From the IMG/VR virus record IMGVR_UViG_3300045974_000132, positions 222,394 to 286,393 of that record: 64,000 bases of DNA. The stretch is one strand, 5' to 3'. Each line of letters begins with the position of its first letter. Positions within the stretch are counted from its first letter, which is position 1. The translations under genes were made by a program, and so were the position numbers. This document shows, piece after piece, positions 48,080 to 64,000 of the stretch. The notes beneath the pieces were generated by a model that did no database searches, was not told the origin of the DNA, and worked only from the letters and a program-made list of their open reading frames with translations.

Positions 48080-49252
48080 ATGGCTTCTAAGAGACTGGAA
48101 AAGATTAAGAAAGCCCGCAGCCTTAATGACATTATGGATGTCGTTAATGATATTGCCTTTGAGTTTAAGAACAGTCAAGCGGTTGTTGAGCGCCTTTTAG
48201 GCAGCCTTTCCGCTGAGATTTCCTTTGATGCTCGTGGAAAACGTCCTCGGGCTAAGGTACAAGATGTTAAGTTTGTTGCCCCTAAGGCGTCCGACCTGCA
48301 GAAGCATATTACCGTTATTGACAAGCTGTACGCAAATGTCCTGGAATTGGACTCTGCTGAAGCAATGGTTAAACAAGCCTTTGTCGGTAACAAGAAACAG
48401 CCTGCTGCTTTAAAAGCTATTGCCGAATTGAAGGCAAGCATTGATCCCATTATCAATGACGCTTTTGATGCCCTACAGGAGATTGCTAATAAGCATCTCC
48501 CAGCAGGTATGTCAAAGTTTGTAGATGATCTGACTTCCTATATCATCGACCGTTTAGATGCTAAGTCTTATAAGGATGTATTCCGTCAGGTATATGTTAC
48601 GTATGATCCTGAGGATAAAGACTTACTACACTTCTCTGAATATATCGGTATCGAAAACCTGAAGACTTCTTCTGGCTTTACTTTCGATCAGTATTACATT
48701 GTTGTTACAGGCGTTATTGACAAATCCGGTAATCTTACTTACTATGTCAATAGCTTCCCTGACTTCAAAGTACCGGGTAAGTACCCAGTCGGTAAAGAAA
48801 CACCTACGATTGATGCAGCTAAGAAGCGCGTAGACCTTCTTCTTTCGCACAATGAGTTTATCGTTATCGGTGATAAGCTTCCGATGCCCGTTACGGATGA
48901 ACGTGCTAAGACTAGTGGTCTTTCGACCATCAAGGGTGTTAAGAAGGCCTCTGTAGTAGATGACGAATTAATCATTAACTGGGATCGCGCTGTTATCAAG
49001 ACTGACGCGGCCAAGCAGAAGATGATTATTGATATTATGGCACGCTTGAATGCAATTGTTAATAGCCGGGCTTCACGTAAAATCTTTACGTACAAGTTGG
49101 ACAATGTAGCCCGTACATTAACATTCATCCTAGTACCTAATGTTGATAAGTCTACCAAGCATTTCAATCTTGAGAAGCTAGATGATGCAGCTACCATCCT
49201 AGACTTGGATGAAAAGCAGAAGAAGGCTCTGCGCTTCGCTCTACAGAACTAA
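48080..49252 (+). CDS. probable virion protein
   Basis: Late block. LGSLSAE motif near residue 42-46. Confidence 0.6.
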   Translation: MASKRLEKIKKARSLNDIMDVVNDIAFEFKNSQAVVERLLGSLSAEISFDARGKRPRAKVQDVKFVAPKASDLQKHITVIDKLYANVLELDSAEAMVKQAFVGNKKQPAALKAIAELKASIDPIINDAFDALQEIANKHLPAGMSKFVDDLTSYIIDRLDAKSYKDVFRQVYVTYDPEDKDLLHFSEYIGIENLKTSSGFTFDQYYIVVTGVIDKSGNLTYYVNSFPDFKVPGKYPVGKETPTIDAAKKRVDLLLSHNEFIVIGDKLPMPVTDERAKTSGLSTIKGVKKASVVDDELIINWDRAVIKTDAAKQKMIIDIMARLNAIVNSRASRKIFTYKLDNVARTLTFILVPNVDKSTKHFNLEKLDDAATILDLDEKQKKALRFALQN

Positions 49253-49261
49253 GGAACGATC

Positions 49262-49522
49262 ATGGAGATAATTATTTCTCTATCTAATACTCCTGAGAAT
49301 GAAGCATACCGCCGTCAGCATATGCCCGTACCGGGTAAAGAGTATAACTTATCTTTGCTAAAAGGCAGCGGTAAGGGCTACTGGGCAGACATGGGCCGAG
49401 TTCATATCGGGTCTATCATAAACGGCATACTCAACTTTATGCGTGTAGGTGCAGACGACGATGAACGGGTGCAACATATCCGTGCTGAGACTATTCCTAC
49501 ACAAGCTCTATTCTCAAGTTAA
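49262..49522 (+). CDS. small protein with SxS leader
   Basis: MEIIISLSN. Confidence 0.7.
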   Translation: MEIIISLSNTPENEAYRRQHMPVPGKEYNLSLLKGSGKGYWADMGRVHIGSIINGILNFMRVGADDDERVQHIRAETIPTQALFSS

Positions 49523-49525
49523 CTT

Positions 49526-50518
49526 ATGAAACATAGACAAACTCCGTACAACTTCAAACTAGAGGTGCTTCCCTTATCGGGCGGCACCTTTTCGGCGCTT
49601 GTACGGAGTCAATATGTTGATGTTGGTACCCTATTTGATACCTACATAGCTCCTGCTTTGTACAGTACCCCGAAGGTATTCTCCGCCCGTGAGCCTTTTA
49701 CTTTGGTAAATGTTACATGTACTCATGCCGGAGTATCTTTTGGATACTTAGAAACGCCTCCTAAAGAAGCGCAACCTTTGGCCTGTACTTGGTTGTTCAC
49801 CTTTGCAATCTCTGATGAACAATATACGCATTTGTCTAAGGTAGGTTATACGTCGCTTCGTTGGATTAACACTCGCGTATGGGGACAGAAGTCTTCTAAG
49901 TTTATCACTATCGGTATTCCTCACACCCAGTCTCAATACCTGGGCCTGAAGTACGATAGCTTGACACCGCGAATTGTTTACTTCCTAATAGGGTGCATTT
50001 CTAAGTCTTTTGTCAGACAGCACAAATACTGGAATCCAAATATCACAGACTATGAAGGTAGTTACAAAGCCTTCAATCTGCCGATGGTGCATAGCGGTTT
50101 CTATATGCAGCCTATGTACAATTTCATGTCACGCACCCCATATCATCTATGGGTATTTAATCGCCACATCTGGTTGTCTGCCCCTAATATGCTCTCCGCA
50201 AAACACATAACTCCTACGACTATGCTGTACATCCTAATGTACATACGCGTAGATAACGGTATGCTAACTAAGGTAGTCGAAGACAAGGTTTTAGACTACC
50301 TAGAGAATAGTTTGTTATCTACCCTTCAGCGTACTCAGCAGGAGATTGCTCCTAGCGGTTTTGAAGACTGCTTATACACGGCTCTTATGTACAGGGATGA
50401 GATTCCAGAGAACCATACTCTTGAGTGGCTGACCGCAAAAGAAAAGTCAGTTATGGAATTTGGATTAGACAACGTTACTGACTACCGTGATTATGTGCGT
50501 ACTCAGTTCTACGCATAA
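49526..50518 (+). CDS. hypothetical protein
   Basis: 330 aa ORF. Confidence 0.75.
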   Translation: MKHRQTPYNFKLEVLPLSGGTFSALVRSQYVDVGTLFDTYIAPALYSTPKVFSAREPFTLVNVTCTHAGVSFGYLETPPKEAQPLACTWLFTFAISDEQYTHLSKVGYTSLRWINTRVWGQKSSKFITIGIPHTQSQYLGLKYDSLTPRIVYFLIGCISKSFVRQHKYWNPNITDYEGSYKAFNLPMVHSGFYMQPMYNFMSRTPYHLWVFNRHIWLSAPNMLSAKHITPTTMLYILMYIRVDNGMLTKVVEDKVLDYLENSLLSTLQRTQQEIAPSGFEDCLYTALMYRDEIPENHTLEWLTAKEKSVMEFGLDNVTDYRDYVRTQFYA

Positions 50519-50529
50519 GGAGCTTCATT

Positions 50530-51657
50530 ATGTTACGAGCAGTTGATGGGTCGGTTGCTACTGCACTGATGACCTTCTTAGATGAAGATGATACGACGAT
50601 CATTCCTGCTCCTGGGTATCCCAGAGTAGCTCTGCTGGATAAAGACAAGACGGTTATTGCTCAATACAATGCAAGTCCTACTGCAAACCCTGGTGAATGG
50701 GAAGCAGCGGTTAGCTTGCCTAACTTAGGTGTTGAGCGTACAGACGAATACCGTCTTCGCTGGCGTATGAGGGCTGCAAACGGCGAGAAGTATCAGAACT
50801 TCGATACGATGTTGATTGATCCTCGTGTCGATCGGCGTGACAGTGAAATAGTAGTGTTGGACGGTGATGATACTGTCGAGCTTGCACTTCCCTTTGCGTA
50901 TTTCGCAAGCAACACACCTAGCAAGTTTCAAGTGTATTCCGGTAACAATGAAGTGCTATCAGGTGCAGTAAGCTTTGAAGATCCTTCTGTTACAAAGACA
51001 GTAGGTGCTGAGAAAACACTAGTTAGCTTTCCGGCAATCATGCTTATGCCTTCTTTGAAAGCAAACCTTTTAATTGTAAAGAGTAAGATCAACGGTCGTC
51101 CTCGTACTTACAGTTATCGCTACTGGTGTATAACTCCGCAGATCGCGTTGGCAGCAACAATGATCGAAGACTTCCTGAATAAGTCTCGTATCCAGAATGT
51201 TATTCCTGAATTGGAATACACTGCAGGTGATATACTCGGCTATCTTGAACGAGGCTTATACCTGTTCAACATGACTGCCGCGACAACAACATTCACAGGT
51301 ACCAACATGCAAGGTATGCTGTTGGATGCGTGGATTACTTGTGCGTCTTACTATGCTCTTGCAACCCAATTGATTGCAGAAGGTAGTTTAGCTTTCGACT
51401 TCAGCGGTCAGGGCATTAGCTTGAACGTTGATCGTACTCCCCAGCTTGATGCAGCTTTAGGACGTATTGAAGCACGTATTCAAGATACTGTAGTCCCATT
51501 GAAGAAGCAGATTACGCAACAAGGCTTCTTTGGCGGTGACGGTAGCCAAGGTGGTACAGCTATGCGTAATCCTTACGCTACAGGTATTCTTTCACTTACG
51601 AATTCCCCAACTACCCGGGTCAATGGATTTAGCAACTTTGTTGGTCGGAGGTTCTGA
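50530..51657 (+). CDS. probable virion neck/adaptor protein (beta-rich N-terminus, helical C-terminus)
   Basis: AAGGAG RBS. FDFSGQGISLNVDRT segment. Confidence 0.5.
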   Translation: MLRAVDGSVATALMTFLDEDDTTIIPAPGYPRVALLDKDKTVIAQYNASPTANPGEWEAAVSLPNLGVERTDEYRLRWRMRAANGEKYQNFDTMLIDPRVDRRDSEIVVLDGDDTVELALPFAYFASNTPSKFQVYSGNNEVLSGAVSFEDPSVTKTVGAEKTLVSFPAIMLMPSLKANLLIVKSKINGRPRTYSYRYWCITPQIALAATMIEDFLNKSRIQNVIPELEYTAGDILGYLERGLYLFNMTAATTTFTGTNMQGMLLDAWITCASYYALATQLIAEGSLAFDFSGQGISLNVDRTPQLDAALGRIEARIQDTVVPLKKQITQQGFFGGDGSQGGTAMRNPYATGILSLTNSPTTRVNGFSNFVGRRF

Positions 51658-51981
51658 TGGAACTATCTATTTCTTTTGGCAATCCTCTACCTTCTCAGTT
51701 TGCGTTGGGTGAGACTGTAGCTGTAGAGCTTCAGAAACTTCAATTAGAAGCTCAAGTTATCGCTGTTGCTTTTGTAGAAGGTAAAGTCCTATACACTGTT
51801 GCCATATATACAGGCTTCACTGAACTAGAGCTTGCTTCGCAGTACGGTTTAACAAATTCAGTAGGCTGGGATGAAAACGGTAGAGAGTTTGTGCGACTGC
51901 AAAACATTGACAGTATCTTCATAAAGCCCTTCAATCCTTTACCAACTTTATTGGTCGGAGGCTCAGATGGAACTGTTTATT
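51620..51981 (+). repeat. imperfect direct repeat of about 50 bp (51620-51671 and 51931-51981) flanking one gene
   Basis: TTTAGCAACTTTGTTGGTCGGAGGTTCTGATGGAACTATCTATT versus TTTACCAACTTTATTGGTCGGAGGCTCAGATGGAACTGTTTATT. Confidence 0.9.
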
Positions 51982-51983
51982 AG
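51657..51983 (+). CDS. hypothetical protein (SH3-like), inserted between the repeats
   Basis: MELSISFG..FALGETV..GKVLYTV..NIDSIFI. Confidence 0.75.
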   Translation: MELSISFGNPLPSQFALGETVAVELQKLQLEAQVIAVAFVEGKVLYTVAIYTGFTELELASQYGLTNSVGWDENGREFVRLQNIDSIFIKPFNPLPTLLVGGSDGTVY

Positions 51984-52233
51984 CGTGTCCGCCCCGGCTA
52001 ACTATGCTGCTTGGCGTAAGCTAATAGAGTTACGCACTAAAGGATCTAGTAGATTTATATGGGCTGACCTAATGGCTGATATAACTGCTCATAACTGTGC
52101 ACCTCGAAACTGGGATCAAGTGCGTAGGGTTGTTAAATAGTTTATCGACAAAGGTAGCTTAGTAGTAATTCATACTAAATCTCATGGACAAGTGTATGTA
52201 ACTCCTAAGTATCTTGAGGAGAATCCTGAATGA
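51967..52233 (+). pseudogene. SxS-leader gene interrupted by an in-frame TAG
   Basis: MELFISVSA..RRVVK-TAG(52138-40)-FIDKGSL..EENPE-TGA. The TGA overlaps the next ATG. Confidence 0.7.
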
Positions 52234-52619
52234 AAGTTGTTATCTGCATGGGTGTACCTACACCTTTAAGTTTAGCTGAAATGTTATTTGACAACTTTTA
52301 TAACAGGACTGATAAAGTAAAAGCTCAGTCTAAATACACCTCTAAGATAGAAGCAATCCTAAAGCCTCTGTTTGTTGAAGCAGCCCGCATAGGTGCAGCA
52401 TTAGCTGAAAGCAATGTAAAAGAGGTTCCGAAGATCGACATACTACGCGGTCTTCCTTCTTTTTCTAAAGGTATATACAAGTTTTTACAAACAGGTTCGC
52501 ATGTTTCAGATCCTAATGACTCACGTTGTCAAAAGGGTATTAGGTACGTACATGTTGAACTCAATCAAGCTTTATCAGAAGTGGCTCAACACGAAATAAA
52601 TTCACATAAGAGGAAATAA
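52230..52619 (+). CDS. hypothetical protein
   Basis: GAGGAG RBS. Confidence 0.75.
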   Translation: MKVVICMGVPTPLSLAEMLFDNFYNRTDKVKAQSKYTSKIEAILKPLFVEAARIGAALAESNVKEVPKIDILRGLPSFSKGIYKFLQTGSHVSDPNDSRCQKGIRYVHVELNQALSEVAQHEINSHKRK

Positions 52620-52623
52620 TCAA

Positions 52624-54087
52624 ATGCCTGTCAATGCTGAATCTGTTGTTAAACTTAAACAACTTATTAAAAATAATCCCGACAATGAATCGCATTATGT
52701 AGACCTAGGCCTTGAGTATTACCAATCAGGTGATAAGGAAACCGCTAAGTTTTCTTGGAAGGAAGGTATCATATACGCAACCTGTTGTGATACTCTTCGT
52801 AGCAACCTTGCTGTTATTATGATCGAGGAGCGTGATTATGTTCGTGCTTCTCAATTACTCTCCCGTGTTGTTATCCCTTCTGCAACAACCTTCAACTCTT
52901 GGGGCATGGTCAAACATGCAGACTTAGACTATGAAGGAGCTATTGATTACTTCAAGAAATCGGTCACTCTAAATCCTAAGTTTAGTACCGCTTACAGCAA
53001 CTTGGGTTTGATGTATCAAGAACTGAATAACTTCCAACAAGCTCAGGCTTACTACTTGTTTGCCTTAGAAGCTGATCCCACTAAGTTGGAAGTCTATTAC
53101 AAGCTAAGTGAACTGTACTTGATGAACGGTGATTACTATAAAGGCTTTGAACTTTATGAGTACCGTTTTCAAGGAGCAGGAGGTGTCCAGTTAAAAGCTA
53201 CATTGGACACTCTAAGCAAGATTAAAGTACCTCGTTGGGGCGGTCAAGCTACAGATCGCTTGTTGTTGATTGCCGAACAAGGCTTCGGTGATAGCTTGAT
53301 GATGCTGCGGTATATAAACCGTATTCGTGACGAAGGACGTGTAGGTAATATCACAATCCATTGTCCGCCTGCTCTTAATCGCATTTTCACTTCTCAAGGT
53401 GTTGATGTTATTAACGACCTTTCGAGTGTTCATGAGAACTGCGATTACACGCATTACTTTCTGACAATGAGTCTTCCTTATCTGTTCAAGGAAGTTCTTG
53501 ATACCGTCAGTGGCAAACGTTACTTGGATATTTCAAGTACGTTGGTGCGATCTGGTAACAACGGCAAGCCCTCTATCGGTATCTGCTGGGCAGGTAGTAA
53601 TACAAACATCAAAGATGCAACACGTAGTCTACCGTTTGAAGTCTTACAACCTTTGTTCTTTGTTGATGAAATTCAACTAGTTTCTTTGCAAAAAGGACTG
53701 AACGTAGAAGGTATCAATAACGATATAAATATATGCGGTGACTTCTATGATACCGCTGCGTTGGTGAATAGTTGTCAGCATATTGTATCAGCAGATACTG
53801 CGGTCATCCACTTAGCCGGTTCTTTAGGTAAGCATGCTTTCTTACTCAATCGTGCAACTAGTGAATGGCGCTGGGGTGTAGAAGGTAGTAAGTCTGTATG
53901 GTATGACAGTGTTGAGATACTACGCCAGAAAAAGCTGTATGACTGGCAACCTGTTATATTGGAGTTGCTGGTTCGATTGAATGCGTTGTACAAATTCGGT
54001 CCATCTACTATTGCTAAGTTGGAGCATTATTACTTATCAAGGAATGATGTAGATAGTGCATTGGTCGTCAAATCACTTAAAGGGTAG
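52624..54087 (+). CDS. TPR-repeat protein with C-terminal GT-B (GT9-like) glycosyltransferase domain
   Basis: TPRs (AYSNLGLMY), EQGFGD, IGICWAG, DFYDTAAL, SADTAVIHLAGSLG, WRW and WY..LRQ..DW. Confidence 0.88.
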   Translation: MPVNAESVVKLKQLIKNNPDNESHYVDLGLEYYQSGDKETAKFSWKEGIIYATCCDTLRSNLAVIMIEERDYVRASQLLSRVVIPSATTFNSWGMVKHADLDYEGAIDYFKKSVTLNPKFSTAYSNLGLMYQELNNFQQAQAYYLFALEADPTKLEVYYKLSELYLMNGDYYKGFELYEYRFQGAGGVQLKATLDTLSKIKVPRWGGQATDRLLLIAEQGFGDSLMMLRYINRIRDEGRVGNITIHCPPALNRIFTSQGVDVINDLSSVHENCDYTHYFLTMSLPYLFKEVLDTVSGKRYLDISSTLVRSGNNGKPSIGICWAGSNTNIKDATRSLPFEVLQPLFFVDEIQLVSLQKGLNVEGINNDINICGDFYDTAALVNSCQHIVSADTAVIHLAGSLGKHAFLLNRATSEWRWGVEGSKSVWYDSVEILRQKKLYDWQPVILELLVRLNALYKFGPSTIAKLEHYYLSRNDVDSALVVKSLKG

Positions 54088-54170: not shown

Positions 54171-55061
54171 ATGCAATCTAGTCGTCGTATGTCCACTTCT
54201 GTTTCTTCTGTTGCTGCTAACTTAGCTGCTGAGAAGGTTCCTACCATAAACCTTATCGGCTACGCTCTTGCTGGTGACGGTCTTGCGCGTGTCGTCGTTG
54301 ATGTTATGCACACCCGTGCAAGCCGTGAAGATCATGCTCTTGTGGGTCAATCTCTGAGCAAGATTTTCGACAACAAGCTGATGGCTGTTTGTGGCTCCTT
54401 CCAGTCTGTTGACAAAGCTCCGTACTCGGAACGCGTTGAAGGCATCGTTCGTGTCAATACTCAGTCAGTTGCTTTCCAAGAAGGCATGTCGGGCTTCCGT
54501 TCTGTTTCTTCCAACATCTTTATGGATGACGAAGAAAAGATGTGGGTTCTGCGTAAGACTGAAGCTGGTGATCTGTTGGTTAAGGGTACTGGTATCGAAG
54601 ATCACGAATCCCTCAAGGGCTTGCTTGATGTTGTATGCAGCAGCGGTTATAGCCTGTCTAGCGAATACAAGAAGGCAACTGCTAAACTGTCTGCCAAGCA
54701 GAAAGCTGTTGTCGGCGGCCACTTCATTGCTTTCGTTTCCAATTCTAGCGGTGAAGTCAATTTCGGCTTCGTTGTTGCCAGCGATGAAGCTAATGACAAG
54801 CTGATCGTTCTGCCTGTCGGTGCGGAACCTGAGTCTGAAGGTGAAGTTGTTGATAAGGTTGCTGTTGTTGAATCTTTCAACATTGAAGACTTCCCGGAAC
54901 CGGAAATGTCTGAACAAGAACAGATGGACCAAGCTGTTTGTACTGCTCGTGGTGTCGTTAATCTTTCGACTCTGCTGGCTTTCTACAAGAAGGTCTTTGC
55001 TCGTTCGCCAGCTTTCTACGCAGAGTTCGCCAAGCGCGCCCGTGCCCACGCTTTCATGTAA
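54171..55061 (+). CDS. probable abundant virion protein
   Basis: AAGGAG RBS, biased codons, ATAATTTT upstream at 54097 and its own downstream hairpin. Confidence 0.55.
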   Translation: MQSSRRMSTSVSSVAANLAAEKVPTINLIGYALAGDGLARVVVDVMHTRASREDHALVGQSLSKIFDNKLMAVCGSFQSVDKAPYSERVEGIVRVNTQSVAFQEGMSGFRSVSSNIFMDDEEKMWVLRKTEAGDLLVKGTGIEDHESLKGLLDVVCSSGYSLSSEYKKATAKLSAKQKAVVGGHFIAFVSNSSGEVNFGFVVASDEANDKLIVLPVGAEPESEGEVVDKVAVVESFNIEDFPEPEMSEQEQMDQAVCTARGVVNLSTLLAFYKKVFARSPAFYAEFAKRARAHAFM

Positions 55062-55071
55062 TTGACTAACT

Positions 55072-55128: not shown

Positions 55129-55419
55129 ATGAAACTAACTATTGAAGTTGCACAATCTCTAAGTGCTGAAGCTAAAAAGTCTAAATGGACAAAAGCTCAA
55201 TTGAAAGCAGACCTTAAAATTCTTGATGCTATTGCTAATAAACAAGTCTTTAGAGAGCATCTAAAGACTAATCTTACAGATGCTCGTAGATTTGGTAATT
55301 CTCGTCCAATGACTCATAAAGTTAATATACGAGGAGCGAACGACGAGATTAAAGAATTAAAAGCTAAACTAGTTACAGGTTTGACCCGGGTTAAAATAAT
55401 GAATTTGTTAAAAGATTAA
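55129..55419 (+). CDS. small basic protein with SxS leader
   Basis: MKLTIEVAQSLSAE. Confidence 0.7.
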   Translation: MKLTIEVAQSLSAEAKKSKWTKAQLKADLKILDAIANKQVFREHLKTNLTDARRFGNSRPMTHKVNIRGANDEIKELKAKLVTGLTRVKIMNLLKD

Positions 55420-55431: not shown

Positions 55432-56184
55432 ATGTACATCCTCATTTCAACTGCCGGCGACATTGATAAGAAGCTAATATCTGAGGAAGACATTGGCCCT
55501 TATATAGTTCGTAAAGAACTGTGGTCTATGGGTTTTGATAAAACTACACCCGCCACAGAAATGACTTCAGCTTATGCTAAAGACGGCTCGTACATTGGCA
55601 ATGAGGATGTTGCAAAACGTCTTTATGAAAAGTACGGTATTATTCCTCAACGCTCGACTGACAAGCATACGGTTAGCAGTATAGGCAAGAGTGAAACCGA
55701 TGGCAAATGGTATGGTTGGTCACATCGTGCAATTTACGGCTTCCAAGTAGGTGACAAGATTAAAGACGGCGATTGCGGCTTTGATCCTTCAGTAGGCGAA
55801 TACACAATCCAAACAGAACAAGACGCAAAGGTAGCAGCTATGAATTTCGCAGAATCAGTATCCGCAGAAACAACACTTCTTATTAAGTCACGGATCTCTG
55901 TGTCTGATGAAGAACCCGGATACAATGAAAAGCTGTTAATTGCTTTGTTGAAAGCCACCGGCTGTAAGCCTACAAAGATTAAGTACGAAGCAAAAGCCAA
56001 TGTGTATAAGTGCATTAACTGGTCTGCTAAAGTAATGACTAAGATGCAACATATCGGCTGGGAGCCACAACCTGATCTGTCACCTACTTCAACTGGTGAA
56101 TATCACTTCGTTCATTCTGGTGATGAAGCGTGTGTAGTTTCTCCAGAAGGTGGTAAGTTTAGTGTAGAGTTCCCTAAGTTATAA
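55432..56184 (+). CDS. two-domain protein with leader and internal SVS sites
   Basis: MYILISTAG, KWYGWSHRAIYGF domain, ESVSAE and RISVSD, then a domain paralogous to 56714. Confidence 0.75.
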   Translation: MYILISTAGDIDKKLISEEDIGPYIVRKELWSMGFDKTTPATEMTSAYAKDGSYIGNEDVAKRLYEKYGIIPQRSTDKHTVSSIGKSETDGKWYGWSHRAIYGFQVGDKIKDGDCGFDPSVGEYTIQTEQDAKVAAMNFAESVSAETTLLIKSRISVSDEEPGYNEKLLIALLKATGCKPTKIKYEAKANVYKCINWSAKVMTKMQHIGWEPQPDLSPTSTGEYHFVHSGDEACVVSPEGGKFSVEFPKL

Positions 56185-56200: not shown

Positions 56201-56389
56201 ATGAAGATCACGTTTCCTTTGGTTTCCGAATCTAAGAAACCGCACAAGCTTAAAAACCCATTGTTGATTAAGATACACAACCTTGAGCAACAGTTGGACA
56301 AATTACGTGCCCAGCATAAAGCAGAAGAGAAGAAAAAGCTCCAATCTAAGCTTCAGCATGTCACAAAGCCCGTGAAACACAAGGCTTGA
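56201..56389 (+). CDS. small basic protein with SxS leader
   Basis: MKITFPLVSESKK, GAGGAG RBS. Confidence 0.65.
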   Translation: MKITFPLVSESKKPHKLKNPLLIKIHNLEQQLDKLRAQHKAEEKKKLQSKLQHVTKPVKHKA

Positions 56390-56414
56390 CATTCTTGCGT
56401 TTTTGTGATATAAT
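56386..56414 (+). promoter_or_regulatory. consensus sigma70 promoter
   Basis: TTGACA (56386-91), 17 bp spacer, TATAAT (56409-14), extended -10 TG. Confidence 0.9.
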
Positions 56415-56713: not shown

Positions 56714-57025
56714 ATGGAAATCGAAATCTCAGTATCGTCTTCTACACCTAATGAAGACAAGTTGGTTGCTTTCTTCAAGAAATCTGGCTGCAATCCTCAG
56801 CGTGTTCACAGCCCTGGTTCTTATGACTTTGAATGTCAAAACTGGGATCTTGAGTTACTCAAGAAAGCTATGAAAGACTGTGGCTGGGAGTCACAAGGTA
56901 AAGGGCTGTTCCCATCTAATGATGAAGGTACTGCATACTTCATTCAAAAGAAAGGTGACGAGCAACTTTGCTGCTTAACTCCGGAACCGTCAGGTTTGTT
57001 TTACATGGCATTCAACGGTTATTGA
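56714..57025 (+). CDS. small protein with SxS leader
   Basis: MEIEISVSS. Paralog of the 55432 C-terminal domain. Confidence 0.75.
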   Translation: MEIEISVSSSTPNEDKLVAFFKKSGCNPQRVHSPGSYDFECQNWDLELLKKAMKDCGWESQGKGLFPSNDEGTAYFIQKKGDEQLCCLTPEPSGLFYMAFNGY

Positions 57026-57034
57026 TTTCGTAAT

Positions 57035-57123: not shown

Positions 57124-58200
57124 ATGACCACCAATTTCCTGTCCAAAGATGGCCTCCTGAACGTCGAAGCGATTGTTGCACTGGCTCGCGAAATCGACAA
57201 GGTTGCAACCAAGGAACAACTCAAGCCTGCTGAAATTCACTTCGCTGGCAAGGTTATTCCGAAGTACGACGCAGCAAAGGCCAAGGCAGGCGGCGAAGCT
57301 TTTACCAAGAAGCGCGCCCAACTCATTAAGGTTCGTTCGCGTATGCCTGCTTCGGGTTCGCGTGTAAAGATGGTTGCAATGCTTCGCAACTACAAGGAAC
57401 TGGAAGAGTTTGAAGACTTCACGGCAGACTTCAATGCTGCTCTGAAGGCAATTGCAGTCCACAACAAGTTGGCTGAAAAGCTGATCGCTACTTCCAAGAA
57501 GGAAGGTGCCAAGAAGCGTGAAATCGGCGCAAAGGAATTCGACAAGAATGCCGATGCTTTCATCAAGCTGATGGCTGAAGCAGGTGTTAAGTCGAGCAAC
57601 ATCGCAATCGGCATGTCGATGATGGGTAAGACAATCATCGTCAAGCTTCCGAATGGTGGTTATGTTTCTGTGGGCAAGGCTGATGCAGAACGTTTTGCTA
57701 AAGCCAAGGAAGGTGCTTCTGCTGCTCCGGCGAAGGCTGCTGCTACTTCTACACGCGGTTCGACACGCGGTGCTGCAAAGGCTGAACCCAAATCTGTGCC
57801 GCGTCGTTCGCGGGAAGTCTCGAAGCTTGCACCGATCTCCGATGCAATCAAGAAGGTTGGTGCTTCCCGTCGTGCAGCAAAGGGCGTTGCTGAAAAGACT
57901 TCTACGCGCGGTGCACGTGCAGCGAAGGCCGGTACTACCGCAGCGCGTGAAACTCGTTCGGAACGGGCATCGCGTCGTGAAGCTACTGACAAGGTTGTTG
58001 CAAAGGCTTCCCGCTCGGCAGGTAGTGCTTCGTTGAACGCTACGAAGGCCAAGGTTGCCGCTGCTACAAAGCCTGCAAGCACTCGTTCGTCACGTGCCCC
58101 GGCCGCTGCTACAAAGCCGGTTAAGAAGGTTGCTGCAAAGCCGGTTGCTGCTGCAAAGAAGGTTGCCGCTTCATCTACCCGTGCATCGCGTCGCGGTTGA
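57124..58200 (+). CDS. basic nucleoid-like protein A (globular N-terminus plus H1-like Ala/Lys/Arg tail)
   Basis: Tail such as AAATKPVKKVAAKPVAAAKK. Paralog of 58339. Confidence 0.75.
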   Translation: MTTNFLSKDGLLNVEAIVALAREIDKVATKEQLKPAEIHFAGKVIPKYDAAKAKAGGEAFTKKRAQLIKVRSRMPASGSRVKMVAMLRNYKELEEFEDFTADFNAALKAIAVHNKLAEKLIATSKKEGAKKREIGAKEFDKNADAFIKLMAEAGVKSSNIAIGMSMMGKTIIVKLPNGGYVSVGKADAERFAKAKEGASAAPAKAAATSTRGSTRGAAKAEPKSVPRRSREVSKLAPISDAIKKVGASRRAAKGVAEKTSTRGARAAKAGTTAARETRSERASRREATDKVVAKASRSAGSASLNATKAKVAAATKPASTRSSRAPAAATKPVKKVAAKPVAAAKKVAASSTRASRRG

Positions 58201-58228
58201 TAGTTGATCTACTTGTTAAGTAACACCG

Positions 58229-58257
58229 AAGGGAGCCTTAAAAAGCTCCTTTTTTTT
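58229..58257 (+). terminator. intrinsic terminator
   Basis: AAGGGAGC-8 nt-GCTCCTTTTTTTT. Confidence 0.9.
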
Positions 58258-58296
58258 ACGTCCACACCTTTGGTATAGAAAATTCAAAGGTAGATG

Positions 58297-58304
58297 CTAA
58301 TTTA
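58297..58304 (+). promoter_or_regulatory. CTAATTTA putative late promoter
   Basis: Recurring motif 35 bp before the start. Confidence 0.6.
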
Positions 58305-58338
58305 GACATATGGTTTATTAACTAAAGGACGACTTAAA

Positions 58339-59172
58339 ATGGCTAAAATTTCCTTTTCCGCAGCCTTGCTGGCGGATGACTCTTCTATCAAAGTTTCTGT
58401 TTCTGCTGCAAATCCCTATCTTTCTGCGGATGGTTTGATTGATGTTGCTGCCCTAACTAAGTTGGCAAACCGTATCATGACAGCTAATGGGAAAATCCCT
58501 GAATCAGCTAGTCGTGCAAAGCTTATTAGTCCTACCTTCTATACAGCAAAACCTGCTGAGAAGTATTCTGCTTCACTGGAAAAGAAGAATGACCACAAGT
58601 ACAAAACTCTTCGTGGACAACAAGTAAAGTCCCGTACTAAGTTACCTCCTGCAGGTAGCAGCATTAAATTCAAGTTGTTACTTCCTGCGCTACTTGAAGG
58701 TGCTGATAAGACGGTCGCTGCTGAAGTCCGTAAAGCTGTTTCCGCTATCAATAGCCACAACAAGAAGGCTGTTAAGGTAGTAGATAAGGTTAAGACTGAA
58801 AAGGGCAAGATTCGTGATGCAGCCAACAAAGAGTTTGATGCCAACGTTGACGTTGTTACTCAAATCCTTCTTGCTGGTGGTATCAAGGAAACCGGTATTG
58901 CTGTAGGCCAGTCTATGTTCGGTAAGGTTGTGCATGTTAAGCTTCCGAACGGCGGTGTTATCTCTATCGGTAAGTCTGATACTTCCAAGTTCAATGCTGC
59001 TAAGAAGTCCGGTGGTGAAACTGCTGCTGCTCCTGCTGTGAAGCCAGGTCGTGTAACTATCTCCCGCAAAGCACCTGCTGCCAAGCCCGCACGTTCTGCT
59101 CGCGTTGCTACAACTCGCGGTGTTCGTAAGACAAAGGCCGCTACATCTGTTCGCCGGGCTGCTGCTAAGTAA
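58339..59172 (+). CDS. basic nucleoid-like protein B (paralog of 57124 with extra SxS leader)
   Basis: IAVGQSMFGKVVHVKLPNGGVISIGKSD versus IAIGMSMMGKTIIVKLPNGGYVSVGKAD. Confidence 0.75.
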   Translation: MAKISFSAALLADDSSIKVSVSAANPYLSADGLIDVAALTKLANRIMTANGKIPESASRAKLISPTFYTAKPAEKYSASLEKKNDHKYKTLRGQQVKSRTKLPPAGSSIKFKLLLPALLEGADKTVAAEVRKAVSAINSHNKKAVKVVDKVKTEKGKIRDAANKEFDANVDVVTQILLAGGIKETGIAVGQSMFGKVVHVKLPNGGVISIGKSDTSKFNAAKKSGGETAAAPAVKPGRVTISRKAPAAKPARSARVATTRGVRKTKAATSVRRAAAK

Positions 59173-59183
59173 GGAGGCCTGTA

Positions 59184-59837
59184 ATGGCTATCTCTCGTAG
59201 TAATGGCGTTACCCGTCGTAGGGCACGTAAAGCAGGTTTAGATAATGTTGACGGTAATCGCATCATTATTGATGGCCCAAAGATCGTTCGCCGCCTTAAG
59301 GGTGCTTATGTTAAGAAGGGGGCGGCTCTTACTAAGAATGATCTGAAGCAAGAGGAAATAGCACCTTCTGATGATACAGAATCCTCTACCCAGGATCTTC
59401 CCGAAGTAGAGTCTGTTACGGTTACTGACTCTAACACTAAAAAGGAACCTAAAGTTATGGAACGCGTTAAGATCGCCTTATCGGGTGACGTTATCTTCAC
59501 CCCTTACACAGACGGTACTCAGTATGCTTGCCGTCGTGATGCGCTGGCCAATCTACGTCGTCGTATGCCCTCTTTCGAGGTAATGCTGTCAGATGTTACA
59601 GGTGAAGGTCAAATTGACTTTACCTTATCAAATGAGTTTGACATTGAAGGTGAAGAAGTGGCCTTGACTGCACGTGGACTTGCTTCTCCGTATGAAATGG
59701 CTATTCACACTATTACTATCAACTACAAGGATAAGAAGTTTGATGTTAATCCTGTAGATCGTGCACGTAGTCCTGAAGATACTGTTAACTTCCTTAAGCG
59801 AGTGGCGGTGAATTGTGTTAACGGCGTTTATGCTTAA
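59184..59837 (+). CDS. hypothetical protein
   Basis: AAGGAGG RBS. Internal MERVKIALSG. Confidence 0.75.
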   Translation: MAISRSNGVTRRRARKAGLDNVDGNRIIIDGPKIVRRLKGAYVKKGAALTKNDLKQEEIAPSDDTESSTQDLPEVESVTVTDSNTKKEPKVMERVKIALSGDVIFTPYTDGTQYACRRDALANLRRRMPSFEVMLSDVTGEGQIDFTLSNEFDIEGEEVALTARGLASPYEMAIHTITINYKDKKFDVNPVDRARSPEDTVNFLKRVAVNCVNGVYA

Positions 59838-60039
59838 AGTGCAAGCAGAGGCTCGTCGAAAGGTATGTGACTCCTGTGACCAGAAGCGTACTTCTTTCGG
59901 CGTAGACCTTTGCAATAAGTGCGGCTGCGTAATTACTTTTAAAGTCAAGTTACGTGAGTCTGTTTGTCCTCTACATAAATGGGATTCAATAGATGCGGCC
60001 TCAAAAAATACGAATCCTCTCAAGCCATCCCAAGCGTGA
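59830..60039 (+). CDS. small Cys-rich protein (DUF6171-like)
   Basis: R..VC..C..C.KCGC...KVKL...CPL.KW. Confidence 0.65.
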   Translation: MLKVQAEARRKVCDSCDQKRTSFGVDLCNKCGCVITFKVKLRESVCPLHKWDSIDAASKNTNPLKPSQA

Positions 60040-60229
60040 AGAAGAGATACCCAACATTACACACTGGCTTAAAGCAAACCAATGTTCTTTAGTAATGCCT
60101 AATCAGGTATATCATAAGGGCAAGCATATAGGTACGCTTAATGCAGTGGACAGTAAGTTGGTGTTTATTCCTTCAATCACTTGGGAAGAGTGGGACGCTA
60201 TAGATAAAGCACATCCGCACTCTTCGTAA
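59993..60229 (+). CDS. hypothetical protein
   Basis: Fills the gap, start uncertain. Confidence 0.5.
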   Translation: MRPQKIRILSSHPKREEEIPNITHWLKANQCSLVMPNQVYHKGKHIGTLNAVDSKLVFIPSITWEEWDAIDKAHPHSS

Positions 60230-60251
60230 GGCTTAGATCGAGATATATAAC

Positions 60252-60953
60252 ATGAGTGAGATTACTATGCCTAACGGTCGTAAACCAGGTAAGGTTGAAG
60301 CAAAGAAACCGGGTCTAGTAGGGAAACCTGTTGAGCCTGAACAGAAGCGTAAGAAAAAGAAACGTCCTACTGAGGATGCACAACCTAAAGCTGATAAGCG
60401 TTTAAATCGTGCTACCAAGAGACTACCTGATCTTCAATCACAAGCTTCTGACTTGGAAGAGGAGATAGGTAGTTTAGACTTAGAAGGCTCGGGCGGACCG
60501 GAAGCTGTATTCAAACGTGAATACGTTAGTATGCTTCAGTTCAATGCCAAGCTTATCAAACGGTTGAATACGCAACTTGAAAGCACGTTATCTTCGCGGG
60601 ACATATATGCGCTTAGTACGATAATGTCCCAACAGCGGGAGGTTATTGCAGACCTTCGTACTATTGTTGACATGAGCGAACAAGTAGAAATGGTTCAACG
60701 CCAAGTCTTAGTTCCTTTTGTCAGTGATACTACCCAGCTTTTGACTGACGTATATTTCCAACTACGTCGTCTTATAACGGAAACATCCACACCTAGACAA
60801 ACTCAGTTTGCTTTAAATCAATTAGATGATTTGGTAAAGCAGTTTGGATCGGGCTTGCAGACTACGCATGAAACCTCCAAGGATAAGCTTTACCAAATCT
60901 TGCTAGGGGATGCACAACCTGCTACTGCTAAGAAAAGGAAGAACAAGAAATGA
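60252..60953 (+). CDS. hypothetical helical protein with basic termini
   Basis: 233 aa ORF. Confidence 0.75.
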   Translation: MSEITMPNGRKPGKVEAKKPGLVGKPVEPEQKRKKKKRPTEDAQPKADKRLNRATKRLPDLQSQASDLEEEIGSLDLEGSGGPEAVFKREYVSMLQFNAKLIKRLNTQLESTLSSRDIYALSTIMSQQREVIADLRTIVDMSEQVEMVQRQVLVPFVSDTTQLLTDVYFQLRRLITETSTPRQTQFALNQLDDLVKQFGSGLQTTHETSKDKLYQILLGDAQPATAKKRKNKK

Positions 60954-61245
60954 GTACGATTCAGGTTTCTATTTCAGGTATTGACGGCATTACAGCTTTT
61001 ATATTCCTTCCCAAAACTAACAAGCACGTTGCTTTTAACCATGTCTGTGTTAAAGAAGCTAAAAAGATTGTTAAGGAATTTGGCTTTATGAAGAAATGGA
61101 ATTTGGCAAAGACTGGCTTTGGGATACTAAAGGTCAACCTAACTACGTAACAGAGTCCTTCTACGTAAAGAATCGTAAAGCTATTCACTTTGCTGGGGAT
61201 AGAGCCATCTTGAACTTCCTTCTCTGGCTAAACCGTCAAGTATAA
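60950..61245 (+). pseudogene. SxS-leader gene apparently frameshifted near 61075-61082
   Basis: MSTIQVSISG..KKIVKE continues plausibly in the -1 frame as WLYEEMEFGKDWLW..AILNFLLWLNRQV to TAA 61245. Confidence 0.5.
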
Positions 61246-61250
61246 CCAAT

Positions 61251-61260
61251 ACTGTAAATA
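61251..61260 (+). promoter_or_regulatory. ACTGTAAATA putative promoter
   Basis: Recurring motif 22 bp before the start. Confidence 0.6.
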
Positions 61261-61281
61261 TATTGTATAAAGGAGGGCGTA

Positions 61282-61734
61282 ATGTCCTATTCGACTTTCA
61301 AAGAAATGGAGAACCGGATTAGTCCGTTCTTGCGGTTTGCCGAACAAAAAGGTATGTTAGCTTCTCATTCTGAAGAGTCTAAAATGCCTAAGCCTGATAT
61401 GCCGCAACTCAGCTACCTGCGCATTGAATTAGATCGTCTTCGTCCAGGTATGGCTGACTATATCGTCCGTGTTTCTACTCCTTTGTATGAAGGCGTCGAT
61501 AAGTCAAATACAGTCCTTAGCATACGCGGCAATCGTAGCCTTGCTAAGTTTGAAGCTGTGAAGAAGCTAGCCGACGTTATCGGTAAGGAAATGATTGAAC
61601 GTGAAGATGCTACCCATGATTGGGAAAACTTCGATAGCGAACATCTTGCCGACTTGATCGCAAACTTCCTTAAGTTCTTTGCCCTTACAGCCAACGCAGA
61701 TCGTCTTCAATTCACCACTGAAGCTTTGTCTTAA
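61282..61734 (+). CDS. hypothetical protein
   Basis: AAGGAGG RBS. Confidence 0.8.
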   Translation: MSYSTFKEMENRISPFLRFAEQKGMLASHSEESKMPKPDMPQLSYLRIELDRLRPGMADYIVRVSTPLYEGVDKSNTVLSIRGNRSLAKFEAVKKLADVIGKEMIEREDATHDWENFDSEHLADLIANFLKFFALTANADRLQFTTEALS

Positions 61735-61749
61735 ACATAGGTGTAATAA

Positions 61750-62496
61750 ATGAACACCTCGCTTAACGGACTATTTTCTCAGTTTGGCGCTAAAGGTATG
61801 CCTCCCTTTATTAGTGAAGATTTTTCATCTTCATGGGACGCCTATGATGAAAGCGGCCACCTAAAAGAAACCACACCCAGGGAACGCGTGATAAGCGTCC
61901 TTGGGTTTTTGCATTTGATGAAGCAAGCAGGCTATAAGAAAACAGCAGTAAATCCGTACAAAGCGTATGAAGATTTGCTTGCTGAAGAGTTTGGTCAGTA
62001 TGCTAAGACTCTCGCACAGGAGCTTCGTAAGCTTCGTGTGTTTGACCTGTTCCGCATATATAAGACTCACTTCGAGGTAGCGCCTGTGCTACGAGGTAGT
62101 CGTGATATTCATCTAAGCTTTTGTGTTATGCCTAAGCGTAAAGAACCTTTAGATAATACGCTCAACAAAGCAGAAGGCTATTTGTATAATCGTGATCTAC
62201 CCATCTTTCTCCAAGAACGTTGGAAGAAGATGAATATTAAATCAACGTCGATTAAGCCTAGGTCTGCACTACCTAAATACTTTGATCTTATGAAGAGTCC
62301 TTCTGTACTTGGGCGTCTTCCGCTTCTCATTAATAACAATTATTCTTTGCATGTATCTCGATCTGCTGGTGATATGCTTGTCTTCCGCTTTAAGGTTGCC
62401 CAGCCTGTAGAACAAGTATCGTGGATGAGTAAACATGCTCACAACCAGTTACTACGTAAGCTGTGGGTAGCTTCTTTCAAATCTTTGCAGGGCTGA
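61750..62496 (+). CDS. hypothetical protein
   Basis: 248 aa ORF. Confidence 0.75.
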   Translation: MNTSLNGLFSQFGAKGMPPFISEDFSSSWDAYDESGHLKETTPRERVISVLGFLHLMKQAGYKKTAVNPYKAYEDLLAEEFGQYAKTLAQELRKLRVFDLFRIYKTHFEVAPVLRGSRDIHLSFCVMPKRKEPLDNTLNKAEGYLYNRDLPIFLQERWKKMNIKSTSIKPRSALPKYFDLMKSPSVLGRLPLLINNNYSLHVSRSAGDMLVFRFKVAQPVEQVSWMSKHAHNQLLRKLWVASFKSLQG

Positions 62497-62502
62497 CATA
62501 TC

Positions 62503-62937
62503 ATGAAACCTAGCGTACTTAAAGCTCTTGAGCGGGTAGCTTCATTATCTGCGGAAAGTGCAAATTTGGTTGGACAACTAAAGTCCAATCCGAATGAACA
62601 AATAACCGGTGATAATACAGCCACTATAGCGAAGCTTACTTCAAGCATTACCCAATTGAATTCAGAGCTATCTCTTCTACGCATGGAAGCGATTCCTGTA
62701 GATGCGGTATTATCTGATAGTGAGATTGAAAACTTCACTACTTCCTTTGAAGAGTATCTGTCTAAGTCTACCAATATCAAAACAACATTGCTAGGCTTCA
62801 CTAGGACATTCTTTTTGCCCTACTCTCCTCCTGTACGAGTAGTGATTGCTAACACAATCCTAAACTACTGTACAAAAAATGACCTGTCGGCTTCTGATCT
62901 GTGGCGTGACATTGTTGCGAATACGGGGTATCTCTAA
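62503..62937 (+). CDS. hypothetical protein with SLSA motif
   Basis: MKPSVLKALERVASLSAE. Confidence 0.75.
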   Translation: MKPSVLKALERVASLSAESANLVGQLKSNPNEQITGDNTATIAKLTSSITQLNSELSLLRMEAIPVDAVLSDSEIENFTTSFEEYLSKSTNIKTTLLGFTRTFFLPYSPPVRVVIANTILNYCTKNDLSASDLWRDIVANTGYL

Positions 62938-64000
62938 ATGTTTATTAAACCTAAAATGCCTAGGCTGTTTGCAGAGGCGGATGTTCTGTCTTTGTCAGCG
63001 GCTGCAAAACCCACAGGTTCTACGATTGAAAGCTTTCTACCTGTTGCTCTTGATCCAGATAGCGATGCTGATTTCCGTAGGCATCTACACCCGCGGCGCT
63101 CGGTAAAAGCTCCTAAGATGTACGTAGAACTTGCTACGTACATGTGTGAGCTTAGTGCCTACCTTGAAGCAATCTTCGGTGGCCTAAGTGAAGGCCTTGT
63201 TAATCAGAAGCGTTGGACAGATAACGGTAGAGATATTGGAGCTGAAATCAGCAAGACTATCGACCATCTGTACTCTACGGCTGTTGACAAAGAAGGTACT
63301 GTCAAGCGTTACATTCAAGCAATGTCGCAAGGTGCCAACCATATCATCAAGCCTAGCGTTCGTTTCAAAGACGGCATGGATGTTATGTTTGTTGGGCAGC
63401 GTGGTGCAAATAAAAGCACTATTCTTAGCCTGCCCGTGGCTAATATGCCTGTTACTATTCCTACGACAACAAACTCATATTTTCATCGTGAGCTTGATGA
63501 AAACCAAATGAATGATCCTAAGTCTAAGGCGTACATTGATACCGCTTGGGCTATTCAGAAGATTTTCTTCAAGACTGAATTGAATTCTATTAAGAGTTCC
63601 TATTCACGCATTGTCGATCAAAAAGCTATCGGTGAACTTGAAAAGAGCCTTGCCGAAATTACCCGCATCCTTACTACAGGGCCACTTGCAAAGATTGGGG
63701 TTGCTATTCAACCGCTCCCATTTGCAGGTGTTCTATCTCCGACAGTAACTACCTATCTAAACAAGTATAACAGCTTGTTGGTTGTGCGTGAGCCTGATAG
63801 CACTGCTGTACAAGCCCGTGTTTTGAAAGCAGACCTGCCTGATGAATCTTTAGGCATCAGTATGTTGAAGCAAGCAATGCAACCTACTATTGCATTCTCG
63901 TTTGCTCTTAATCTTCCGATCAACATCGTGCAATACATTGTTCAAGCTAAGGACAAAGTCAGCCTTGCTTCTTTGAACGTATGGGCATCTGTTTGGGCAT
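62938..64000 (+). CDS. N-terminus of a large protein (partial, absent from ORF track)
   Basis: ATG 62938. Frame is open for 354 codons to the window end. MFIKPKMPRLFAEADVLSLSAAA. Confidence 0.85.
   Translation, partial: MFIKPKMPRLFAEADVLSLSAAAKPTGSTIESFLPVALDPDSDADFRRHLHPRRSVKAPKMYVELATYMCELSAYLEAIFGGLSEGLVNQKRWTDNGRDIGAEISKTIDHLYSTAVDKEGTVKRYIQAMSQGANHIIKPSVRFKDGMDVMFVGQRGANKSTILSLPVANMPVTIPTTTNSYFHRELDENQMNDPKSKAYIDTAWAIQKIFFKTELNSIKSSYSRIVDQKAIGELEKSLAEITRILTTGPLAKIGVAIQPLPFAGVLSPTVTTYLNKYNSLLVVREPDSTAVQARVLKADLPDESLGISMLKQAMQPTIAFSFALNLPINIVQYIVQAKDKVSLASLNVWASVWA

Follow-up and report, generated by a model that had tools for sequence, protein, structure and literature searches.

The internal proteins of phage T4 form a diverse set that counters host defences, and they have only the capsid-targeting sequence (CTS) in common (PMC3012670). 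The proteases of the phages SPN3US and phiKZ cut after A/S/G-x-E, and in SPN3US, where the site is A-x-E, there is a preference for Val at P4 and for Ser at P1′ (PMC10052503). In this study, we investigated a short N-terminal leader that is shared by otherwise dissimilar proteins of an uncultured phage. The leader genes were found in a window of 64,000 nucleotides, which is the last 64 kb of the 286,393-bp IMG/VR contig IMGVR_UViG_3300045974_000132 (window position = contig position − 222,393). The proposed signal would consist of Met, an alternating hydrophobic strand of 3–5 residues and then small-x-small, which reads ME[IL]xIS[VLI]S in the source phage. The sequence evidence presented here made it probable that the leader is a protease-linked tag for capsid targeting and processing.

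The leader was compared with the T4 system. As on the T4 internal proteins and Alt, a short conserved N-terminal peptide (about 10 amino acids) was found on unrelated proteins. The T4 peptide ends in the prohead protease motif, which is also present in the T4 capsid, scaffold and protease, and the putative cleavage motif of the present clade appeared in the same kinds of protein. The clade protease was predicted to have a gp21-like fold. The tagged set was hypervariable and included predicted anti-defence proteins, as in T4, and several of the cargo proteins were small and basic. In addition, a leader protein with a weak PARP match in a related phage was a possible parallel to Alt. However, the motif was hydrophobic-S/A-x-S/A/G↓ and not L/I-x-E↓ as in T4 (arrows mark cleavage sites, which are predicted for the present clade). 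The tag was strand-like and 8 amino acids long, in contrast to the MKTYQEFIAE-like peptides of T4. The capsid protein and protease had no sequence-level similarity to those of T4, and the phages belong to a different clade. There were also far more tagged genes (at least 10 in about 160 kb), with predicted cargo of up to about 2400 amino acids, and cleavage and packaging are predictions from sequence. Since P1 was Ser, Ala or Gly and not Glu, the leader would be a functional analogue of the T4 CTS and not a member of its sequence family.

The processing systems of phiKZ (gp175) and SPN3US (gp245) were similar in that these jumbo phages process many of their head proteins, some of which are ejected, at a motif of three residues in which P3 is small and P2 is free, with a hydrophobic P4. 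However, their P1 is Glu, their clade is unrelated, and their propeptides are mostly 111–254 amino acids long, compared with mostly 8–23 here. We know of no conserved portable N-terminal tag described for phiKZ or SPN3US. In staphylococcal phage 80alpha, the capsid and scaffold proteins have an N-terminal leader that mimics ribosomal protein L27 and is cut by the host protease Prp. This is likewise a short common leader on different head proteins that is removed at a fixed site, but the host encodes the protease, which has only two known substrates, the motif (..F↓A) is different, and no variable cargo is involved. The herpesvirus assemblin (S21) is in the fold class of gp21 and cleaves between Ala and Ser with hydrophobic residues upstream. 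Its preference for a small P1 resembles the P1 proposed for the present clade, and the two are linked through the gp21 fold match only. However, assemblin is an enzyme of a eukaryotic virus that cuts the scaffold C-terminus and itself, without cargo tagging.

The source phage belonged to a clade of 200–300-kb jumbo phages that are not nucleus-forming (Y3/Alexandra/PaBG/Lu11-type). Megablast of the 48–64 kb block gave no nucleotide-level match to GenBank phages. For the connector protein encoded at 50530, identity was about 42% with the proteins from Erwinia phages Y3 and Alexandra and from Dickeya phage AD1. Pseudomonas, Burkholderia, Ralstonia, Achromobacter and Yersinia phages had more distant relatives, among them PaBG gp195, whose annotation is head-to-tail joining protein. 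At the window end, the giant helicase gene was interrupted, and it resumed at contig position 1, which indicated a circularly permuted contig. Of the 286 kb, about 160 kb was examined, and the portions outside the window are called L006, L101, L107 and L192. The start portion of the contig, in which seven stretches were looked up, contained only replication and tail genes. The head module (L192, contig 90.7–111.4 kb) was located with a protease profile of 24 sequences, while neither a capsid-protein profile nor a four-sequence protease profile recovered the source contig. Other uncultured contigs used for comparison included L003, which was extended as L005 and has a connector 65% identical to that of the window, L127 (261 kb), and L200, which comes from the same metagenome as L003. 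In the literature searched, we found no report of the tag and no leader or cleavage motif for this clade or its protease family; the proposed strategy is T4-like with a small-x-small specificity.

The N-termini quoted in the initial annotation were checked in the window, and every one of them was present at its coordinates. We then applied a single fixed pattern, in which hydrophobic-x-hydrophobic-S-x-[S/A] had to lie among residues 1–25. It was found in 7 of the 23 plus-strand open reading frames (ORFs) from 48 kb on, namely those at 49262, 51657, 51967, 55432, 56714, 58339 and 60950. Upstream of 48 kb, it was found in only 1 of 77 ORFs, and this one (28894) was a lipoprotein signal peptide. 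This agreed with the contrast between late and early genes drawn in the initial annotation, although the late timing of the 48–64 kb block is assumed. The looser S-x-[S/A], allowed anywhere in 45 residues, was less selective, occurring in 17 of the 23 late-block ORFs and in 25 of the 77 upstream (32%). Hydrophobic-S-x-S was also counted. In the late block, there were 23 occurrences against 10.3 expected (z 3.9), a number reached by none of 300 within-protein shuffles. The early proteins showed no enrichment, with 26 observed and 24.8 expected from shuffles.

In its tight form, ME[IL]xIS[VLIF][SG], the leader was found on four genes of the window. These encode proteins of 86 amino acids (MEIIISLS↓N; 49262–49522, +), 108 amino acids (MELSISFG↓N, a variant with Gly at P1; 51657–51983, +), 57 amino acids (MELFISVS↓A; 51967–52140, +) and 103 amino acids (MEIEISVS↓S; 56714–57025, +). 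The gene at 49262 had no orthologue in L005 and no Pfam or PHROG match. The start of 56714 is an internal ATG of ORF 56672 and was picked by homology to the C-terminal domain of the protein encoded at 55432 (g55432). Near variants were MYILISTA↓G on g55432 (55432–56184, +) and MSTIQVSIS↓G on a 66-amino-acid protein (60950–61150, +). Further tight copies, MELYISVS, MELYISIS and MKILLSLS, lay near the head module of the source phage in L192, and one more, MEVLVSIS, lay at 64 kb of the source contig. No credible family match was obtained for the small leader proteins in Pfam, PHROG or PADLOC, and a search for homologues of g56714 among 5.8 billion proteins returned only itself.

The leader serine was encoded by TCG, TCA, TCC, TCT, AGC and AGT in different copies, and this variation indicated that selection acts on the peptide. 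A 44-nt DNA repeat was present at 51628–51671 (+), with a second copy at 51938–51981 (86% identical), and in two neighbouring leader genes it ran from the Shine-Dalgarno sequence over the start codon into the first codons of the leader. By analogy with what has been proposed for T4 internal-protein loci, this repeat across two leader starts could promote cassette exchange. A shared promoter, ribosome-binding site or repeat was rejected as the cause of the tag, since a DNA repeat is common to just one pair of leader starts and the serine codons vary freely. Paralogy was also rejected. The tagged proteins had been called unrelated, and in all-against-all BLASTP they resembled one another in the tag only, with the exception of two pairs of paralogues, g56714 with the C-terminal domain of g55432 and g57124 with g58339. 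A strict degenerate codon pattern for the leader gave 18 matches across IMG/VR, which is about chance by our own estimate. This meant that the tag is not a generic phage N-terminus and probably not a widespread signal.

The description of the proteins as beginning with the leader held for the tight set, but the sites in 48080, 55129, 56201, 58339, 62503 and 62938 were internal or extended. Of these, 48080 and 62938 were backed by orthologue alignments, where the S and the A after it belonged to a very small number of invariant columns. The gene at 48080–49252 (+) encodes a conserved head-region protein of 390 amino acids (phrog_36434). Its 44-residue N-terminal segment ends S42-L43-S44↓A45 and is followed by a linker of variable length. 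This S-L-S-A was invariant in an alignment of the window, L003 and Y3 gp184 proteins despite about 20% overall identity, and the L003 orthologue had an insertion of roughly 60 amino acids directly after it. An extended 12-residue leader, MKLTIEVAQSLS↓A, was found on a basic 96-amino-acid protein (55129–55419, +), and extended leaders that similarly end in SES↓A occurred in Y3 gp194, gp187 and gp174. A very basic protein of 62 amino acids (56201–56389, +) had the extended leader MKITFPLVSES↓K. The basic protein g58339 (58339–59172, +) had an N-terminal extension of 22–23 residues with KISFS↓A and KVSVS↓A. This extension was absent from its basic paralogue without a leader, g57124 (57124–58200, +; isoelectric point (pI) 10.7). 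The pair had a parallel in L005, where 14291 is without a leader and 15523 has one ending VSES↓A. The pI was at least 10 for g55129, g56201, g58339 and g60950. In a backbone protein of 144 amino acids (62503–62937, +), RVASLS↓A was located at residues 11–16, and the L005 orthologue had LVSVSS↓V. The two cases that the initial annotation itself had marked as weaker, 54171 and 59184, remained weak and found no support beyond the closest relative. The former is a conserved backbone protein (phrog_17573; 54171–55061, +) with the candidate site STSVSS↓V. The orthologue in L005 (68% identity) retained SVSS, and those in L004 and PaBG had no S-x-S.

The leader was then examined in relatives. In L005, S-x-S was located exactly at residues 6–8 in 10 of 33 ORFs, compared with 0–1 (about 0.5) at other offsets. 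The leaders there included MKMLISLS↓A, MKVLISLS↓G, MKTLISIS↓A, MKTVVSLS↓A (twice), MKTFISLS↓K and MKKLISLS↓G. In the cultured Erwinia phage Y3, at least eight proteins started with M-[KEQ]-I-[FL]-[IV]-S-L-S. The carriers were gp193, gp195, gp205, gp206, gp208, gp231, gp240 and the Nudix hydrolase gp120, and the tag was also found on gp133 and the helicase. The gp133 family is a conserved protein of 223 amino acids encoded between two tail-tube genes. It kept M-L-x-x-[LIV]-S-x-S↓A, while P2 varied (E, T, V, A or L), and the linker after the site varied too. In the Lu11-type phages, the protease had A-x-A↓F (or LALG↓F) and the tagged proteins started with M..[IL]ALAA or M.ISLAA. This partial covariation of the protease site with the leaders supported a common reader of all sites. 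Because a sister lineage uses A-x-A, the Ser/Ala specificity proposed in the initial annotation was widened to small-x-small.

The same motif was looked for in the head proteins. Y3 gp143 matched phrog_18299, the head maturation protease, and the source genome encoded a homologue with 45% identity to it in L192. No true match to the clade protease was found at the sequence level in Pfam, including S77, or in the PDB. However, an AlphaFold (AF2) model built from 24 orthologues, with a predicted TM score of 0.80, gave T4 gp21 (5JBL) as its top three PDB matches with probabilities of 0.91–0.95, and the match that followed had an E value of 0.8. H124 and S181 were invariant among the orthologues and H208 was nearly so. 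The first 19 residues, which hold the site, were disordered in the model. In about 15 lineages the N-terminus had S-x-S↓F, for example RSES↓F, ESKS↓F, MSRS↓F, LSLS↓F, LSMS↓F and QSIS↓F, and in each lineage examined it had small-x-small followed by Phe. The source protease had MLSQS↓FGLG. An N-terminus of the kind seen across the lineages would be expected of an autoprocessing site. In the source phage, the reading frame of the protease (L192 9584–10720) extended without a stop for 132 codons ahead of the usual start (MLSQS↓F), with a good Shine-Dalgarno sequence before the far upstream ATG. Either the protein has a long N-terminal extension or the true start is the internal Met.

The initial annotation had proposed a check of the major capsid and scaffold proteins for the site, and it was found in both kinds of protein, including those of the source phage. 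The source major capsid protein of 365 amino acids had LLSTS↓TGEFNA at residues 33–35 and HQSTS↓AE at residues 67–69. The capsid proteins of Y3/PaBG-type phages had LALS[ESQ]S↓TGE.NA, and that of Y3 also had VHSQS↓AA at residues 66–68, where a cut would remove about 19%. For PaBG, the capsid protein was reported to lose roughly 20% of its mass (PMC7412058). A cut at 69 of 365 residues, as predicted for the source phage, would be consistent with this loss. In the acidic scaffold-like protein, D-x-[DE]-S-E-S was repeated in a poly-acidic region, five to six times in Y3 and four times in JA11. Both proteins also had FDSLS↓A, followed by LVSLS↓R in Y3 and by LVSIS↓R in JA11. The acidic scaffold-like proteins of the source phage had ASES, ESES and VSVS sites. 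In the source head set, there were 31 S-x-S against 16.5 expected (z 3.7), and none of 300 composition-preserving shuffles reached this number. No enrichment was seen in the early proteins (62 vs 67.6 expected) or in the replication and tail proteins (156 vs 145).

The giant SNF2 helicase begins at 62938–64000 (+), with DVLSLS↓A at residues 15–20; its gene model was taken from a Logan contig. Hydrophobic-S-x-[SA]↓A was present in the helicases of five phages, about 10–15 residues upstream of the first conserved block, LxPVxLDP. The P3 Ser and the P1′ Ala were invariant, and the N-termini were otherwise unalignable. In the structural proteome of PaBG, the 221-kDa helicase gp202, which is the orthologue of 62938, is virion band 1 (PMC7412058, Table 1). 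As a side observation, the helicase (2388 amino acids; 62938–64000 and then L006 10436–17602) contained an intein with a LAGLIDADG endonuclease according to weak Pfam matches, and the metagenome contig was opened inside this gene.

The proteins with the leader spanned 57 to about 2400 amino acids, so that the term small effectors used in the initial annotation was too narrow. One of them, g55432, was predicted to be a Tad6 Thoeris inhibitor. Residues 24–144 matched Tad6 (PF25188), a type I Thoeris inhibitor that binds ThsB, with an E value of 7e-36 and a score of 123.9 bits, compared with a gathering cut-off of 27. In the AF2 model, the predicted local distance difference test (pLDDT) was below 50 for residues 1–5, above 90 for residues 11–140 and below 50 for the linker at 148–162, and a strand of two residues was present at positions 3–4. 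The modelled leader thus lies outside the folded domain. Within the flexible linker, where the C-terminal domain starts, there was a further internal site, RISVS↓DEE. The seven closest homologues were all tagged (MKLHISIS↓K, MKLLISLS↓S, MRLHLSTA↓G and others), and distant Tad6 proteins (138–150 amino acids) began directly with the domain and had no leader. A similar difference was observed for the Nudix hydrolase. Y3 gp120 had a tagged extension of 13–14 residues, while the PaBG enzyme was without it and the L127 enzyme had a different extension ending ESTS↓A. In L005, a leader protein of 758 amino acids (4203–6479; MLLSISAA↓P) had a sub-threshold match to the PARP catalytic domain (E 9e-5, 22.6 bits vs a cut-off of 26.7). 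This protein may be a packaged ADP-ribosyltransferase like T4 Alt.

The leader genes were linked to the protease gene. Three genes with the leaders MELYISVS↓G, MKILLSLS↓K and MELYISIS↓K were located 5–7 kb from it in the source genome, and the MKILLSLS↓K gene encodes a KMPT-N/SprT-like metallopeptidase. In L200, the leader was found on at least 9 of the 17 genes around the protease. In L127, nine genes lay between the protease and scaffold genes, and seven of them had N-terminal leaders or propeptides. Four genes of this interval started with MKIK[VI]FVSES↓[AS], a fifth with MKINVMISES↓A, and two more with MKVLVSLNS↓A and MRVLVSIA↓K. The interval also contained a homologue of the g57124/g58339 family with a propeptide ending VSTS↓A.

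The gene content of the window was compared with that of L005. The backbone conserved in both consisted of the connector, g54171, the pair g57124/g58339, g59184, g60252, g61282, g61750, g62503 and the helicase. In contrast, none of the tight-leader genes of either phage had an orthologue in the other. The head-tail connector gene of this backbone (50530–51657, +; 375 amino acids; phrog_17327, E 1e-99; 42% identity to Y3 gp182 and 65% to L003) marked the upstream edge of the variable block. Since the tag would be portable, the tagged genes would form a block of fast turnover between backbone genes, as in T4-like internal-protein loci.

In the proposed mechanism, the leader would be a signal read by the gp21-like prohead protease, the scaffold core or both. 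Proteins with the signal would be co-assembled into the prohead. The protease would then cut after the second small residue, with S/A at P3, S/A/G at P1 and a hydrophobic residue at P4, and this motif would also be where it trims its own chain, the major capsid protein and the acidic scaffold. The mature cargo would remain in the head and probably be delivered to the cell together with the DNA. Basic DNA-binding proteins, the Tad6 Thoeris inhibitor, the SprT-like metallopeptidase and the giant helicase are predicted to be among this cargo, to which relatives would contribute a Nudix hydrolase and perhaps an ADP-ribosyltransferase. The initial annotation had interpreted the leader as a system that loads proteins into the head for injection, and each computational check capable of refuting this interpretation came out in its favour. 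We infer that the leader proteins are cleaved, encapsidated and injected with the DNA. A more far-reaching proposal is tentative, and we rated it at a little below an even chance. According to it, the clade pre-loads a changing arsenal (Tad6, Nudix, SprT-like protein, possible ADP-ribosyltransferase and helicase) by means of a portable 8-residue tag and a small-P1 protease of the gp21 fold, so that the inhibitors arrive with the DNA before gene expression. By analogy with assemblin, the protease of the clade would, as part of this proposal, have switched from Glu to a small residue at P1.

Several observations weighed against the processing tag. The fold match to gp21 was moderate, with TM scores of 0.33–0.49 and an E value of about 1e-2. 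More distant capsid proteins had ALDxK or no small-x-small at the first site, which meant that this site may not be cut, and the processing of the PaBG capsid protein was reported without cleavage sites (PMC7412058). Strict covariation held for the Lu11-type group but had exceptions elsewhere, and for this reason it was used only as partial support. L137 and L143 had an S-x-S protease together with A-x-A leaders, and L127 showed the reverse. Not all leader genes were obviously late, because g56714 follows a consensus sigma-70 promoter (56386–56414, +) located upstream of 56451 and of this leader gene. The genes of Y3 gp231 and gp240 were also among plus-strand genes adjoining sigma-factor, SSB and RNA-ligase genes. 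Finally, a 102-amino-acid protein with the Acb2/Tad1 hairpin domain (PF24729; L107 9471–9779, about 64 kb of the source contig) had no leader. From its sequence, it is a candidate for a second gene of this genome against Thoeris or the cyclic-oligonucleotide-based anti-phage signalling system, and it meant that anti-defence genes are not tagged as a rule.

Other explanations of the leader were weighed against these results. The motif might be a prohead-protease site restricted to head-assembly proteins (core, scaffold and DNA-condensing proteins) with no effector delivery. The tagged proteins would then be degraded or serve as structural filling, and Tad6 and the enzymes would be tagged for another reason or act in the producing cell. 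The very basic or K/A/R-rich-tailed nature of many tagged proteins would suit DNA condensation, and the acidic scaffold bears many sites. However, some of the cargo domains have their targets in the cytoplasm of the next host. Examples are Tad6, which binds ThsB, and a Nudix hydrolase that is conserved with a leader in two divergent phages. The possible PARP-like domain is a weaker case of the same kind. The very high gene turnover is also typical of host-interaction genes and not of core assembly proteins, and we considered this explanation unlikely. A slightly smaller chance was given to an uncleaved docking beta-strand for a common partner such as the portal, the scaffold, a chaperone or a phage hub, with the resemblance to the protease and capsid sites being coincidental or due to the same partner. 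The alternating hydrophobic pattern is strand-like, AF2 placed a short strand in the g55432 leader, and the distance from Met1 is fixed. But the conserved positions are two small residues and a small P1′ and not the hydrophobic ones only, while P2 is free in the gp133 family. A docking strand also accounts poorly for motifs that recur internally in linkers and repeatedly in the scaffold, and the location of the site at the disordered N-terminus of the protease is typical of autoprocessing.

A different kind of signal was judged very improbable. Small-x-small is the −3/−1 rule of signal peptidase I, and many leaders start Met-Lys-hydrophobic, so that Sec/lipoprotein-like export, a ClpXP degradation tag of the Met-basic-hydrophobic type or an mRNA/translation-initiation element was considered. 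The Sec/lipoprotein signal peptide was rejected because the hydrophobic stretch is only 3–4 residues, far too short for the Sec h-region with its core of 7–15, and because residue 2 is often Glu, which does not suit a positively charged n-region. The true signal peptide at 28894 looked quite different, and the tagged helicase, Nudix and Tad6 proteins are cytoplasmic enzymes. The Glu at residue 2 in the source phage is not the basic residue of a degradation tag, and codon variation argued against an RNA element. None of these signals explained why the protease, the capsid protein and the scaffold have the motif as well. It was hardly credible that the leader has no common function and reflects beta-strand starts of small proteins (MKI.I..), local duplication and post-hoc motif picking. 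Several of the listed examples were loose, as was the S-x-[S/A] found in a third of early proteins, two leader starts have a 44-nt repeat in common, and the IMG/VR scan was about chance. However, the spike at residues 6–8 in L005 and the enrichment over composition-preserving shuffles spoke against this, as did the retention of the tag across phages whose connectors are only 42% identical. The amino acids were fixed while codons varied, and there was no similarity beyond the tag.

Some further features were observed around the leader genes. A gene at 47159–47932 (+) encodes a protein of 257 amino acids (pI 12) with about ten KKVSTRKPR-type repeats, which correspond to tandem DNA repeats with periods of 45–102, and no leader was seen on it. 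It occupies the site of the lysine-rich Y3 gp185 and of the PaBG virion protein gp191, and its product is probably a packaged histone-like DNA-binding protein. Among the head-region genes, 52624–54087 (+) encodes a TPR protein of 487 amino acids without a leader, with a C-terminal glycosyltransferase-like region according to weak PHROG matches. The promoter at 56386–56414 (TTGACA-17-TATAAT, 12/12, extended −10 TG) was the only perfect sigma-70 promoter in the block, and strong terminator-like hairpins were located at 47957–47984 and 58228–58253. In the early region, an ORF of 152 amino acids (43156–43614, −) was 33% identical to residues 226–312 of the phage's own major capsid protein (pairwise E 9e-12), and the adjacent ORF of 204 amino acids (43638–44252, −) had no capsid similarity. 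The former is a truncated capsid-like paralogue, which could be a decoy for capsid-sensing defences or a gene remnant. Adjacent HAD_SAK_2, GTP cyclohydrolase I and PTPS-like genes were found at L101 12678–14765 (about 19–21 kb of the source contig), and a thymidylate-synthase-like gene of 331 amino acids was found at 1218–2213 of the window. These genes suggested a pathway for 7-deazaguanine or another DNA base modification.

If the proposed reading is true, the motif would be the first cleavage motif for a prohead protease family that has no reported site in the literature searched. The boundaries of the mature capsid, portal and scaffold proteins would become predictable in dozens of jumbo phages. 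The 8-residue tag would also be a rule for listing the packaged and ejected proteome from the genome alone. Such a list would be a shortlist of first-strike anti-defence candidates, with a Thoeris (ThsB) inhibitor already among them, and if this inhibitor is delivered ready-made, as predicted, Tad proteins would have a mode of action that is new for them. The tag would be a candidate for packaging foreign proteins in large phage heads, as the T4 CTS is used. For the evolution of these phages, it would mean that the internal-protein strategy of T4 evolved again, or diverged beyond recognition, with a different protease specificity.

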